A DNA stretch of 64,000 nt from Phaeosaccion multiseriatum (GCA_965112735.1 OZ218954.1:4278001-4342000); one strand, 5' to 3'; positions 315 through 12,447 are shown, counted from the first letter of the stretch. Translations and numbers: made by a program. Notes: generated by a model not told the origin, from the sequence alone.

Positions 315-3300
315 TCAACAGCCCCGCTTTTTGGCATGCCCCTTCACTGGCGCCATACACCGTACACACTTGGCATTCAGTGCCCCCAATACATCCTCTG
401 CGCAGCTCTCACAGGCCAGCACCTCACAGCGGCAGGGCGTAAAGCAGCGGGTGGCAGGAGCGTCCATGCAGATGCGGCAGTCAGAATCCACCACGAGAAT
501 CTGTGAGTGTATGATGATGTGTAGAAGAGGGGTGGAATCAATTACGCAAGAGATTACGTAAGGGGGTAGAATAGGCAGGCAGCACAGGGGACGCAAGTGA
601 CGGAGATTGTGCACAGTTTTGATTTCCTGTGAGCGTATCAATATTGGACACCACAAATGGAGTCGATATCAATTAGTACACAGCCTTCCGTCCCGATACC
701 ACCCAGCCTCCTCACCCATATCCCTCTTACATCCTCTCTGGCCCATACGCTTCTGACTTACATCCAGTGTGCCGCGGATGCTTCTGGAGTCAGCAGGGGG
801 GATGGAGAGGGGCGGGCTCCGGAGCTGTCCTTCTGAGAGCTGACGAGCGGCCTCCACACTCACCACGCCGTTTTTCTGCACAGGAAGTAAAAGGGGGGAG
901 GGGGAGAAGAAATGGAGATAGAGAGGAAAGAGGATAGAAAGAGAGGGGGGGGGGTGGGGGGGACAGAGGAAAGGAAGTCAAGTGATACTCTTCCTCGTCC
1001 CCTCCCTCCCTCCCTCCCTCCCTCCCTCCCTCCCTTTCTCTCTCCCCCAGGCGCCCCTTCACTGACTTTCCAGGGGGAAGGTAGTCAAGTATCCCTCGCA
1101 CTTGATGCTCTCTCTACATCTCTCTCCCTGCACCTCTCTCTCTCCCCCTCTCTCTTTACCTCTCCCTCTCCCTCTGCCTCTCTCTCCCCTCCACCTCCTC
1201 TCCCTCCCTCCCTCCCTCCCTCCGTATCACCAACACACTCACCAAGAAGGTAGTCAAGTGCCCCTCGCAGTTGATGCCCTGCAGCACCTCTCTGAGAAGT
1301 TCCCAATCCCCAGAGTCCGCCACTGACGCCGCCCCCGCTGCAGGAGCAGCAGTTCGAGATGATGCGGCAGCAGCAACAACACTAGAAGCCCCTCCTGGAC
1401 CGTCCTGGGGAAGAGGGGAATGAGTGGTGAGAGAGGCAAGTGCGGAGGGGAGGACATTGGAGAGAGAGAGGCGAGAAAGCGGGGAGAAAGTGGAGAGGAA
1501 GAGAAGGAGAAAGTGGAGAGGAAGAGAGAGGGTGAGAGGCGGGTGTGGGGATGGGTGGGGTATATAGGTAAAGGCAGTGGGGAAGGGAAGGGAGGGGAGG
1601 GGTTGAATGAAGGGATGAACAAAGGAAGGAAGGAAGGAAGGAAGGAAGGAAGGAGGCACCTCCCTCTCCCTCTCCTTCCACTGCCATGCCGACGCACCAC
1701 GAGCATGGCCTCCCATTTGATGTCCATCCTGCCTGCAAGCTCCTTGACCACCTCAACGCAGTTGAACTTGTTGGCCTTGAGCACAGACGTCACCTCGTCT
1801 GACCACATACATACACACATACGCACAGAGAGAGAGAGAGGGAAAGAGAAAGACGAGACAGACGAGGAGACCAACGCACATACAAAGATAGAGAGAGCGG
1901 GAGAGACAGAGAGAAGCAGACCCGTGCATACACCCACACACGTATAAAGAGAGAGAAGAGTGTAAGCCATACGCACGGGACGGAGGACGCATGACTTGTC
2001 TTTAGAAGGCCCCTTTCGTCCTTCCCCCTCCCTCTTCCCCCTCCGCTCCCCTTCACCCTCCGCTCCCCATCCACTACCCTCATCCCCTACCTTCTCCACC
2101 GCATCCCTTGCTGAAGTAGTACTTGACCGCCGTCGGACTAGTCACAAGCGTTCCTTGCACCACAGAGCGGACGTAGTTGACGAGGTCACCCAAGGCCACG
2201 ACTGAGGTCAAGAGATGGCAGTGGATGGGGAGGGGAGGGGAGGGGAGGAGAGGTGAGGGCCAGGACTTGGAGAAAAAAGGCGACATATATTGTAAACGAA
2301 ACCAAACCGACCAACCAAACACGAGCACAGGCACACACACGCACGTACGCACGCACGCACCTTGAGGTGCCCCGGGGGGCACGCCAGCCCCTGCCTTCTC
2401 TGCGGCCTTCTCTGCCCTCTTGAGCCTCTCCTTCTCTTTCTTGGAAGAGCGCCTCTCCACCTTCAGCGCCTCCTCCCTCTGCAGCTCCTCCACCAGCCGG
2501 GCTGCAGCGGCGTCCGCAGCGGCGGTCTCTTCGGCGGTTGGTGGAGGAGGTGGTGATTCAGCGCCACCAGCCGCCTTCCCCTTCTTCTTCCTCCTCCTAT
2601 TTCTGCTGCTGCCATTACCCCCATTCATGCCGTCAGCCCCGCCTACATCGCCGACTGATCCAGTAGAAGGAGGAGGGGGGGAGGGGGAGCGCGAGGGGGA
2701 GCGAGAGGAAGGGCGCAGGGGCACAGAGGCAAAGGACTCTCGCGCACCCGCCCCTGCGCCGGAGTAGGGCTGGCTAACACGCGCCGTGGAAGTGACTAAT
2801 TTTAAGATACAAACGGGGGGGTGTGTGTGGGGGGGGGAGGTATATAGAGAGAGAAAAGAGGGAGAGGGTGGGGGAGGGAGGAGGGAGGGGGGAGGGAGGC
2901 AGGGAGAGGGAGGCAGGGAGGGAGGGGGGGAGGGAGGGAGGGAGGGAGGCAGGCAGGGAGGGAGGTCAGTGTGCGACGGTACATGGATTGCTATGCTGCA
3001 GTTGTGTCTTCTCTGTCACCAGCACTCAACGTTCCCTCCCTCCCTCCCTCCCTCCGACTTACCCTCTTCTTCTTCCTCCTCCTCTAGGTCCTGCTCTTCC
3101 TCGGCCTTCTTGAGATGCTTAATCACTTTCTTGGCCATTTTGCGTTGTTTGTCAGTGAAGTGCTAGGGTTGGGTGGGGGGGGGGGGGGGCAGCGGATGGG
3201 GAGCAGTGTCGAGAGGCAGGGAAACGGTGAGGGTGAGGGTGAGGGTGAGGGTGAAAGTCTACTTCGAGGGAGAGGAGCGTGAGTGCCTGCTCAATCCCTC

Positions 3301-4692
3301 TTAATTAGCGTCAATACCCTCCTTATCAACGTTAAATGTCCCCCTTGCCAAGGTGACTGCCCGCCATATAACAATCTGCCCCTCACCGTTTGGCAGTTCC
3401 CGCACGGTGCGCCGGCCTTGACGGAGGCCTTGACGCAATAGGCACAGTACATGTGGAGACACGTGTCACAGTTCAGGAGAGCGTTCAGGTCTTCTTCACA
3501 CACCTTGGGGGGGGGGGGGGAGGGAGGGAAGGAGGGAGGGAGGGAGGGAGGGAGGGAGGGAGGGAGGGAGGGAGGGAGGGAGGGAGGGAGGGAGGGAGGG
3601 AGGGAGGGAGGGAGGGAGGGAGGGAGGGAGGGAGGGAGGGAGGGAGGGAGGGAGGGAGGGAGGGAGGGAGGGAGGGAGGGAGGGAGGGAGGGAGGGAGGG
3701 AGGGAGGGAGGGAGGGAGGGAGGGAGGGAGGGAGGGAGGGAGGGAGGGAGGGAGGGAGGGAGGGAGGGAGGGAGGGAGGGAGGGAGGGAGGGAGGGAGGG
3801 AGGGAGGGAGGGAGGGAGGGAGGGAGGGAGGGAGGGAGGGAGGGAGGGAGGGAGGGAGGGAGGGAGGGAGGGAGGGAGGGAGGGAGGGAGGGAGGGGGGA
3901 GGTGGGCAAGAGCAGCGTCAGCAGGGAGAGAAAGGAGAGAGAGAGGGGGTGTGGAAGGGTAGTGTGAATCGCAGGAAGGGTGAAGAGAGTGCTGGTGCCT
4001 CTACAACTGAAAGGGAGGGGTGAAGAGGGCGCCTCGACGCACGTGCTACTTGTGAATAAACCGCGCTGTACCCTCACCGTGAAGTCGCAATTAGGGGTGG
4101 TGCATAGGAAGGAGCAGTCCCTACACACTAGGTTTGAGCAGCATCTGCGGAGCGGGGAGCGGAAGGGAGGAGGAGGAGGGAGGGGGGAAGAGGAGCATCA
4201 GACGCTGGGGGCTCGGTAGGCAAGCTCTCTTTCTCTCTCTCCCTGGGTAAGTTTTGCAACACAGAAGACGCAATCCGCGTGAGCACCACGCGCGCACCTG
4301 CAGTCACGGTAGCATGCTTCGCAAGTGACATTGATGCATGCGTCCGCCGAGCAAACCACTCCGGGGTTGTCGACGTCCCCCTCCGACGGGAAAACGCCTC
4401 CAGCCTTCTGCACATTAGCGAGAGAGAAAAGGACAGAGAGGAGGGGGGGTTACAGACAGAAAGGCAGGCGGGCAGAGAGCAAAGGAGAGAGAGAACCCGA
4501 GAGAGTAGAGAGCTTCAGAGGGGGGAGGAGGCGCGGGAGAGCGCGCGCGGGAGAGGAAATAAGCGAGAGCGGGAACGACGATCCAGCCAACTAGCCCGCC
4601 CCCGCTTGCTGCAGCTGCCCACGTACCACTTCAACCACGGTGCAAGTCGCCAAGCACGTGACGCACGCACATGCCTCCTCCTCGTCCGCCAT
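315..4692 (-). CDS. Multi-exon Cys-rich N-terminus / SAM / C-terminal RING protein (paralogue A)
   Basis: ATG at 4692 (MADEEEACACVTCLATC); Cys-rich exons at about 4255-4415, 4075-4145 and 3385-3503; SAM-like DWELLREVLQGINCEGHLTTFL / KNGVVSVEAARQLSEGQL...DSRSIRGTLD; last exon RING CRICMDAPATRCFTPCRCEVLACESC...CVRC, stop at 315. GT-AG introns filled with microsatellites. Confidence 0.8.
3521..3896. repeat. (GGGA)n intronic microsatellite
   Basis: Near-perfect tetranucleotide run; source of the GGRE/PPSL pseudo-ORFs. Confidence 0.98.
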
Positions 4693-11400: not shown

Positions 11401-12447
11401 TGGGGGAGGAGGGGGGAGAGAGGAGTGAAGGGGGGGGGTTGGGTGGGCTACAGTAGGGGCCTGGGCGGATAGGGGGCGGGGGGGGGAGTCTTGGGGTGCT
11501 AAGTAGGCACCATAGTACCGCTTAGCTGGATTGTGTTGCCACCCCACTCACCGCGAACTTGCACTTTGGCACAGTGCATCCCCAGGCATGCTCGCGACAC
11601 ATGAGCACGCTACAGATCCTGCGGCACACGGACCATTGGCAACAAAAGCAGAAGCAGCAGCAGCAGCAGCAGCAGGAGGAGGAGGAGGAGCAGGAGGAGG
11701 AGCAGGAGGAGGAGGAGCAGGAGCAGGAGCAGCAGCAGCAGCAGCAGGAGGAGGAGGAGGAGGAGGAGGAGGAGGTGGAGGTGGAGCTTAGCACAGGGCA
11801 GGCGGTGGGGGGGGGGGGGGGAGAAAGCTCAACACACAGACAAGACACAGAGACAAGACACATACATATATTTTACATATATAAGCGCTGCCCCACCTGC
11901 ATGCTCTGTGGCAGTCGTGGCACACATGGCTGTCACACCTCTCGTCCTGACAACTCACAGCGCACTCTTCGTTATCCTCGAAGAGTGTGCCGTTCTGCAG
12001 GGCCTGCACGGCACATGACATAGCACGCGGAGAAGCGGGGAGGGGGTGAGGGAGATTACAAAATACATTTGTACATTAGGGAGTCTGAGGTGTGCATGTG
12101 TGTTGGCTTCATGCGGGGGGCGACTGGCAGAGCTGGGAGCTGAGAGAGAGAGAGAGAGAGAGAGAGAGAGAGAGGGCGGGAGGCGTTCTCCTACGCATCT
12201 ATTCCAAACGGGGGTAGCCACGTACCTCTCTCGAGAGCAGGGTGCACTTTTTGTCGCAGTGATGACACTCGACAGGGCCCTTCTTCTCCTTCTTTGCGTT
12301 CTTCGAGGTATCATACACCGCTTCTCCGTCGTCGTCCGATTCTACTTCGATTACTTCGATTACTTCCGCTTCAACAGATGCTGGTGCTGCTTTCTTCTTC
12401 GCTTTAGCCTTCTTCTCGCCGAGAAACCCCGGCTTTAGCCCATTCAT
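5485..12447 (-). CDS. Multi-exon Cys-rich N-terminus / 2x KH / SAM / RING protein (paralogue B), putative RNA-binding E3 ligase
   Basis: Probable ATG at 12447; Cys-rich exons at 11088-12260; KH1 SLDFPENVAGWVIGKNSTNL and KH2 FVHCPAQLTGLLIGHGGNTI in the 7480-8760 exon; SAM IEWRALAQEFKRIECEAFLPRFL / EQDITDLETAALMEDADLVEFNIPAAPRKRILDALK; RING CDVCYNAPKTNYFLPCRCPQNVCATC...CVTC, stop at 5485. Confidence 0.85.
5675..5838. repeat. (TTG/CAA)n microsatellite just upstream of the RING exon of paralogue B
   Basis: Direct reading; interrupted near 5690 and 5704, so whether it codes polyQ is unresolved. Confidence 0.95.
10559..10607. repeat. 4 x 12-bp tandem repeat AGAGGCCCAATC, intronic
   Basis: Four exact copies. 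Confidence 0.95.

Follow-up and report, generated by a model that had tools for sequence, protein, structure and literature searches.

A tandem pair of RING-protein genes in Phaeosaccion multiseriatum belongs to an ochrophyte zinc-array KH-KH family, and one copy appears to have lost its KH domains

To our knowledge, RNA-binding RING ligases (MEX-3) and KH-SAM regulators (Bicaudal-C) are known almost only from animals. MEX-3C is an RNA-binding ubiquitin ligase (E3) that ubiquitinates CNOT7 (PMC4617606), and the SAM domain of Bicc1 polymerises and localises the bound mRNA (PMC4561730). In this study, a 64-kb stretch of DNA from the photosynthetic stramenopile Phaeosaccion multiseriatum (hereafter the window) was found to carry two genes, B and A, that lie head to tail on the minus strand with a gap of 793 bp. 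Gene B (12447-5485) runs from an ATG at 12447 to a stop at 5485 in 12 exons and ~1,202 codons, and gene A (4692-315) from an ATG at 4692 to a stop at 315 in 11 exons and ~522 codons. By sequence, both belong to an ochrophyte family whose core consists of an N-terminal cross-braced zinc array, a basic helix, a short helical segment (HEL), and two type-I KH domains. The reading preferred here, to which a probability of about 0.6 is given, is that B is a full RNA-binding, SAM-clustering RING protein of this family and that A is a KH-less tandem duplicate.

The models of A and B were rebuilt from three-frame displays, with the exon ends set via peptide anchors, and all domain and homology tests were done exon by exon or on intact relatives, namely the metagenome protein P0075 and the exons of a further gene, C. 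An exhaustive HMMER search of the B HEL-KH exon against 1.8 billion representative proteins retrieved mostly generic KH proteins, plus P0075, a 1,205-residue single-exon open reading frame on a 36-kb metagenome contig that has the same module order as B. HEL and KH1 of B were collinear with residues 483-708 of P0075 (E 3.3e-5), which also carries the zinc array, HEL, and a helical block termed MID in B's order, while Pfam recognised in it two KH domains (KH_1, 1.5e-30), a SAM (SAM_1, 8.7e-6; 26.5 bits against a cut-off of 23) and a RING (zf-C3HC4_3, 4.9e-10).

Further, a word search seeded from a relative's array found at least 146 database proteins with the zinc array, in Cyclotella, Skeletonema, Thalassiosira, Discostella, Cylindrotheca, Nitzschia, Epithemia, Fistulifera, Mayamaea, Amphora, Seminavis, Fragilaria, and Triparma, and also in many metagenomes. 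Their database names are hypothetical, "K Homology domain-containing", "SAM domain-containing" or, wrongly, FUBP1. Two partial Ectocarpus proteins hold the array tail, MID, HEL, and KH1 before the contig ends. Among the 122 relatives fetched, the array with HEL and two KH domains was present in 106, the same plus a SAM in 6, and plus SAM and RING in 1 (P0075); the Triparma proteins end at the SAM (KH-KH-SAM). The first-pass annotation had regarded A and B as defining a family with SAM and RING among its marks. Neither part of this stands, as the same array and KH-KH occur in the at least 146 diatom, Triparma, and metagenome proteins, in the partial Ectocarpus proteins and in gene C, and SAM and RING are additions found in few of the tallied relatives.

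Membership of the two genes in this family was also seen from the array itself. A family profile made without rows from the window ranked exon 4 of A (4.5e-5) and exon 4 of B (0.0079) first and second among 1,908 window fragments, and exons 2, 3, and 5 aligned in order. Downstream of the array, HEL and two type-I KH domains follow in B and are missing in A, a derived KH-less member. One branch, which includes gene B, gene C, and P0075, extends the core with MID, SAM, and, at the C-terminus, a RING of the IAP/MDM2/MEX3 type.

Genes C and D were reached through the co-location of Pfam KH_1 and zf-C3HC4_3 in the genome; the KH exon of B, searched against the whole genome, returned only itself, and a word search with it gave no hit, which is uninformative because that search is limited in length. 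Gene C encodes the array mostly in one exon, followed by the basic helix, MID, KH1, KH2, a split SAM, and a canonical C3HC4 RING; an additional Cys exon, B-box-like, opens the gene. In gene D, KH-KH is followed by an internal RING and by a split SAM that is almost the same as in gene C, and a further RING closes the protein; the 9.6 kb upstream of this gene showed no zinc array.

In exon-level BLASTP of minus-strand fragments, A and B aligned in nine collinear blocks. The strongest were the RING (1.6e-8), zinc exon 4 (3.6e-6), the SQPYSG block (0.003), the MDI(K/D)W exon (0.006), and zinc exon 3 (0.046), in which B has His and A has Cys at one of the ligand positions; zinc exon 2 and the first SAM half (E 0.14) gave further blocks. 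Intron positions and phases of the two genes coincide for exons 1-5, at 7/8, inside the SAM and before the RING, and in the whole 67-Mb assembly the zinc exon 4 and the RING exon of B each retrieved only A as a relative. The likeness of the aligned exons is far beyond chance, and the earlier description of A and B as tandem, very diverged paralogues, homologous exon for exon, was borne out. A and B alone have some derived RING features in common: PCRC replaces PCGH, CVxC replaces CPxC, and the last Cys is followed by Gln or Met where C, D, and P0075 have Arg. Because the comparable exons, of 35-60 residues, are too short for a tree, the sister relation was drawn from the mutual best hits and these common derived features, and on them A and B are each other's closest relatives.

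Since HEL-KH-KH is present in every other member and A and B are sisters, parsimony indicates that A lost HEL-KH-KH after the tandem duplication. The KH-KH segment of B had been described as an insert, a direction that has to be reversed: judged from the distribution of the aligned sequences, KH-KH is ancestral, lost by A rather than gained by B, and it is A that carries a deletion. B exon 9 begins and ends in phase 0, so its removal keeps the reading frame, and A exon 8 joins directly to a short exon that corresponds to the 3' end of B exon 10.

As to the KH domains, among the A and B fragments scanned Pfam KH_1 (4.1e-16) matched two stretches of B exon 9 only. In the genome-wide KH_1 scan no match fell in A's span and both window hits lay inside B, in line with the claim that two KH domains occur in B alone. 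The best solved-structure matches of the B KH exon were Nova-1 (1.3e-6), FUBP1, and IGF2BP; no MEX3 chain was among its 60 best PDB rows, its top protein-database matches were generic multi-KH proteins, and the BICC1-specific KH models of Pfam did not match B. The GxxG loop of B KH1 (window 8023-8202) reads GKNS, versus GKNG in the relatives (VIGKNGARI in P0075 and Ectocarpus).

In A and B alike an intron interrupts the SAM, and as this leaves Pfam half a domain, SAM_1 reached only 0.12 on the B exon. B exon 11 matched a SAM hidden Markov model (HMM) built solely from Triparma and metagenome relatives at E 1.4e-4; these relatives have a SAM in precomputed Pfam annotation, and that of P0075 passes the cut-off on direct scan. 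The two halves in A scored E ~1 and 6.2 with the HMM, at the expected place, phase, and length. The first-pass annotation had called a SAM in both genes. The domain is supported by the exon match in B, whose exon 11 aligns to the SAM exons of relatives, and in A it is probable, from its position and a weak similarity.

A C-terminal RING had been called in both genes as well, and both last exons scored above the zf-C3HC4_3 cut-off of 27 bits (B, 29.4 bits, 7.1e-7; A, 28.4 bits, 1.5e-6). All eight ligands are kept in cross-brace spacing, seven of them being Cys that are invariant in the alignment and the fourth being Cys instead of His. In active RING E3s, the last CxxC typically contains a Pro that binds the ubiquitin-conjugating enzyme (E2), and the last Cys is followed by a basic "linchpin" residue. 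Neither hallmark was found in the RING of A, which ends in CVRCM, or of B, which ends in CVTCQ, versus CPxCR in genes C, D, and P0075. The hydrophobic residue after the first Cys is kept, as Ile in A and Val in B. Against the PDB, the A and B RINGs gave weak matches (E ~0.02), those of B including MDM4 and the all-Cys NOT4 RING. The P0075 RING matched cIAP/cIAP2 (7e-9), MEX3C (5.4e-5), and MDM2 (7e-5), and its SAM matched USH1G (5e-6), BICC1 (8.4e-5), and also ANKS6; in its C-terminal module, the family resembles RINGs that dimerise and SAMs that polymerise.

The zinc array has a family consensus of about five CxxC-x4-CxxC units that end in a RING/B-box-like finger and the basic helix. In an AlphaFold2 model of P0075 1-145 (46-row alignment), residues 60-140 reached a predicted local distance difference test (pLDDT) score of 83-95, and the predicted fold comprises zinc knuckles formed by small beta-hairpins, a finger that resembles a RING, and a long helix. 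With this array, Foldseek returned nothing below E 0.08, VIA-align reached at best a Z of 5.5, to assorted RING, PHD, FYVE, ZZ, and U-box fingers, Pfam gave no match, and the scores of an ESM Atlas feature search (≤0.84) were at chance level. An IBR/RBR or B-box assignment was rejected, as the PDB profile search offered only the RNF31 IBR (0.011) and the TRIM63 B-box (0.022), neither of them significant, and PHD, FYVE, LIM, and DnaJ-type assignments were dropped, having sub-threshold sequence matches and weak fold matches only. The array is therefore described as one of cross-braced zinc fingers and is assigned to no family. The N-terminal Cys-rich region had been put at roughly 20 Cys and left without a family; the counts are amended to 21 in B and 22 in A, and the region indeed matches no Pfam family. 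MID is predicted to form five helices (pLDDT 85) and is common to A, B, gene C, P0075, and Ectocarpus. It had no Pfam match and no PDB fold match; CUE and UBA were considered and rejected, with no support from Pfam or PDB and just a CUE cluster at a template modelling (TM) score of 0.42. The array and MID are thus two conserved modules that have no Pfam model.

The introns of A and B are all GT-AG and their phases close (Table 1), and KH2 and SAM of B are each completed across exon junctions. That B is one gene is strongly indicated by P0075, whose intron-less gene has this layout too and nearly equals B in length. Every peptide pair quoted in the first-pass annotation was found on the minus strand; its gene A is present, with a first exon (4692-4627, 22 codons, bearing the first CxxCxxxC motif) that it had missed. 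The public runs that hold the locus are four, all from one sample and none of them of RNA; their genomic contigs are collinear through the introns and show no splice joints.

Table 1. Coordinates of the exons of genes B and A (window positions, minus strand) and of genes C and D elsewhere in the genome.
Gene	Exon	Position	Strand	Content	Remarks
B	1	12226..12447	-	ATG at 12447, Lys/Glu-rich lead, first CxxCxxxC motif	GTACGT donor after 12226; motif and donor as in A exon 1
B	2	11897..12003	-	Zinc array part 1, 6 Cys and 3 His	Phase 2 end; homologous with A exon 2 and with gene C's single-exon array
B	3	11552..11618	-	Zinc array part 2, CTVPKC motif	47% identity to A exon 3
B	4	11089..11193	-	Last array finger, RING/B-box-like	E 3.6e-6 to A; aligns to P0075 residues 83-115
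B	5	10826..10907	-	Basic helix after the array (FTKKMRKHAKK)	Corresponds to the pLDDT>90 helix 121-140 in the P0075 model
B	6	10096..10457	-	SQPYSG block and low-complexity Lys/Ala/Glu linker	
B	7	9173..9452	-	Coiled-coil-like linker and MID first half (LREYIRGVV)	
B	8	8933..9033	-	MID second half (VVQALAEQMDIDW)	
B	9	7480..8757	-	Ala/Glu-rich stretch, HEL, KH1 (~8202-8023), linker, most of KH2 (~7650-7480)	Phase 0-0, 426 codons; absent from A
B	10	6601..7308	-	KH2 last helix, long disordered linker, SAM first half	8e-6 to a family HMM that includes B
B	11	6257..6364	-	SAM second half	E 5.9e-12 to the gene C SAM exon
B	12	5485..5673	-	C-terminal RING (all-Cys, PCRC) and stop	zf-C3HC4_3 7.1e-7
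A	1	4627..4692	-	Start codon and first CxxCxxxC motif	GTACGT donor like B exon 1
A	2	4298..4407	-	Zinc array part 1	Phase 2 end as in B
A	3	4078..4144	-	Zinc array part 2 (CTTPNC)	
A	4	3387..3503	-	Last finger of zinc array	E 4.5e-5 to the family profile without window rows
A	5	3063..3162	-	Basic helix (FTDKQRKMAKK) and acidic run	
A	6	2361..2795	-	SQPYSG block and low-complexity linker	
A	7	2091..2201	-	MID first half (LVNYVRSVV)	
A	8	1698..1798	-	MID second half (VVKELAGRMDIKW)	Joins the SAM exon directly, no HEL/KH between
A	9	1243..1404	-	Probable SAM first half (GINCEGHLTTFL)	Weak: BLASTP E 0.14 to B, HMM E ~1; INCE motif common to genes C and D
A	10	762..875	-	Probable, strongly diverged SAM second half	Position, phase, and length as expected; HMM E 6.2
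A	11	315..500	-	C-terminal RING (all-Cys, PCRC) and stop	zf-C3HC4_3 1.5e-6
C (L006)		G000:C12:2593500-2603400	-	Contig 12	
D (L007)		G000:C5:1334500-1342500	+	Contig 5, 1.335 Mb	

Several local features of the window were also recorded. The acceptor of B exon 12 lies inside a CAA/ACA repeat, hence it is uncertain; this run, at 5680-5840, blurs the last acceptor of B. Another microsatellite, a 460-bp GGGAGG-type run, occupies 3500-3960 in A intron 3, and a GGN/CCN run of ~1 kb lies near the window end (62155-63250). The intron after A exon 9 holds, at window 1077-1111 on the minus strand, a decayed copy of the last 35 bases of that exon, 31/35 identical and with a score of 50 versus a maximum of 23 in 300 shuffles. 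Elsewhere on the minus strand, an open frame at 39945-41522 contains about five near-identical SAP-like repeats (LSAAEI(K/M)ALKVSDLKKELSKRELSTKGLKADLVARLLGA) between long poly-Gly runs. The stretches 45729-46343 and 47752-50337, also on the minus strand, hold an ankyrin-repeat gene and, ~2 kb away, a near-duplicate open reading frame in which its C-terminal segment recurs; the similar "VQFVTTGS(I/V)KSLLTRGR" tails of the two copies look like a local segmental duplication.

The preferred reading would work as follows. B most likely binds single-stranded RNA through its KH domains and would cluster through its SAM, and its RING would recruit an E2 to the proteins that sit on this RNA, much as MEX-3C targets CNOT7. 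A B-like gene would have been duplicated in tandem, after which copy A would have lost the HEL-KH-KH exon and most of the following linker exon. A, in which the zinc array, MID, the RING, and a diverged SAM remain, probably acts with no RNA binding of its own, as a partner or a competitor of B via SAM or RING-RING pairing. The analysis shows the gene structures, the homology, the domain content, the family's distribution, and the direction of the KH change; RNA binding, ligase activity, and any interaction of A with B are what we infer. Several observations weigh against this picture. The RINGs of A and B are atypical, being all-Cys and having no Arg behind the last Cys; their ligase activity is therefore uncertain and may be weak or absent, and the GKNS loop may weaken the RNA contact by KH1 of B. 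The SAM of A has no statistical support at the E values given above, and the zinc array and MID have no fold or function assigned to them. The runs holding the locus are genomic only, and the models of A and B rest on comparative evidence. Finally, most family members have neither SAM nor RING, so ubiquitination cannot be the core activity of the family.

Given the atypical RINGs, the GKNS loop of B KH1, and the many RING-less relatives, a scaffold-only or heterodimer-dependent role is a serious rival. A and B might be RNA-granule scaffolds and not active ligases, with their altered RINGs serving only for dimerisation, as in MDMX, and with ubiquitination either arising from pairing with a paralogue that has a canonical RING (C or D) or not taking place. 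C, D, and P0075 keep three features that the A and B RINGs have lost (the His ligand, the Pro in the final CxxC, and the Arg that follows the final Cys), and the absence of a RING from most of the family and the weak PDB matches of the B RING to MDM4 and the all-Cys NOT4 point the same way. However, all eight zinc ligands were retained in both proteins after long divergence, with zf-C3HC4_3 scores above cut-off and the hydrophobic residue after the first Cys in place, and the all-Cys RING of CNOT4 belongs to an active E3. The scaffold role is considered possible, and clearly less probable than the RNA-binding RING protein with a KH-less duplicate. A bolder reading is rather doubtful: the array plus MID would be a new module of ochrophyte post-transcriptional control, and A and B an MDM2/MDMX-like heteromeric pair in which the KH-less subunit tunes an RNA-guided ubiquitin ligase. 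In that reading the module could, for instance, handle E2 or ubiquitin as a second head, or recognise RNA or protein as a new kind of array.

Two further explanations concern the genes themselves. That A is a decaying duplicate, a pseudogene with no function of its own, would fit its length, which is ~700 residues shorter than that of B, its barely recognisable SAM, and the purely genomic nature of the runs. Yet all 11 exons of A are open, with canonical splice sites and matching phases, A exon 4 beats B exon 4 against the family profile, and the zinc ligands of array and RING are all kept at ~40% identity to B, which indicates long purifying selection; decay is thus improbable. It is still less probable that B consists of two adjacent genes, one for the zinc array and MID and one for KH-SAM-RING, that were wrongly merged. 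Such a split could be read from the purely comparative basis of the models, from an in-frame ATG near the start of exon 9, and from gene D, whose KH-KH-RING-SAM-RING order comes without a detected array in the 9.6 kb upstream. Against it, the phases of B are continuous with no stop codon at the end of exon 8, P0075 has all modules in one uninterrupted frame, and the array is joined to KH in one product in gene C, in more than 100 diatom proteins and in the partial Ectocarpus proteins.

Photosynthetic stramenopiles (diatoms, bolidophytes, brown algae, and Phaeosaccion multiseriatum) share an unstudied KH-KH family with a zinc array of its own, of which one branch independently assembled the KH-KH-SAM-RING layout. 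The members form a natural series, core, core with SAM, core with SAM and RING, and a KH-less duplicate, in which the combination of RNA binding, clustering, and ubiquitination can be tested; its practical use will be modest before expression and activity are demonstrated. The proteins are already in public databases, but none has been studied. No paper describing this layout in algae was found in the literature searched, and the relatives are uncharacterised, which agrees with the earlier view that it matches no described family.

The true homologues are the diatom and bolidophyte proteins, such as Cyclotella cryptica HJC23_006380, Fistulifera solaris FisN_17Lh309, and Triparma verrucosa TrVE_jg1547, in which the homologous array, basic helix, HEL, and KH pair follow one another as they do in B. 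Most of them are without MID, SAM, and RING; B adds these three, and A also adds all three, without HEL-KH-KH. Like B, the MEX-3/RKHD proteins join a pair of type-I KH domains, via a long linker, to a RING of the zf-C3HC4_3 family at the very C-terminus, and RNA-guided ubiquitination would be the likely logic of both. Unlike B, they have no N-terminal zinc array, MID, HEL, or SAM. The B KH domains are closer to Nova-1, FUBP, and IMP than to any MEX3 chain (among the best 60 PDB rows), the P0075 RING is closer to IAP RINGs, the A and B RINGs are all-Cys, and the hosts are ochrophyte algae, not animals; the likeness to MEX-3 is one of layout, not orthology. Bicaudal-C/BICC1 resembles the family in having KH domains upstream of a C-terminal SAM, and the KH-KH-SAM of Triparma is exactly that order. 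In contrast to B, BICC1 has three KH and two KH-like domains, no zinc array and no RING, whereas in B a RING follows the SAM. The RING dimers of MDM2/MDMX and the IAPs are of the same Pfam RING family, and B weakly matches MDM4; the rest of these proteins is unrelated. A pair made up of a more canonical and a less canonical paralogue would fit a heterodimer model. The first-pass annotation had seen in B both the KH+SAM layout of Bicaudal-C and the KH-KH+RING layout of MEX3, which is right for the layout only, as the KH domains are closest to Nova, FUBP, and IMP. The layout of B thus converges on MEX-3 and Bicaudal-C and belongs to neither.

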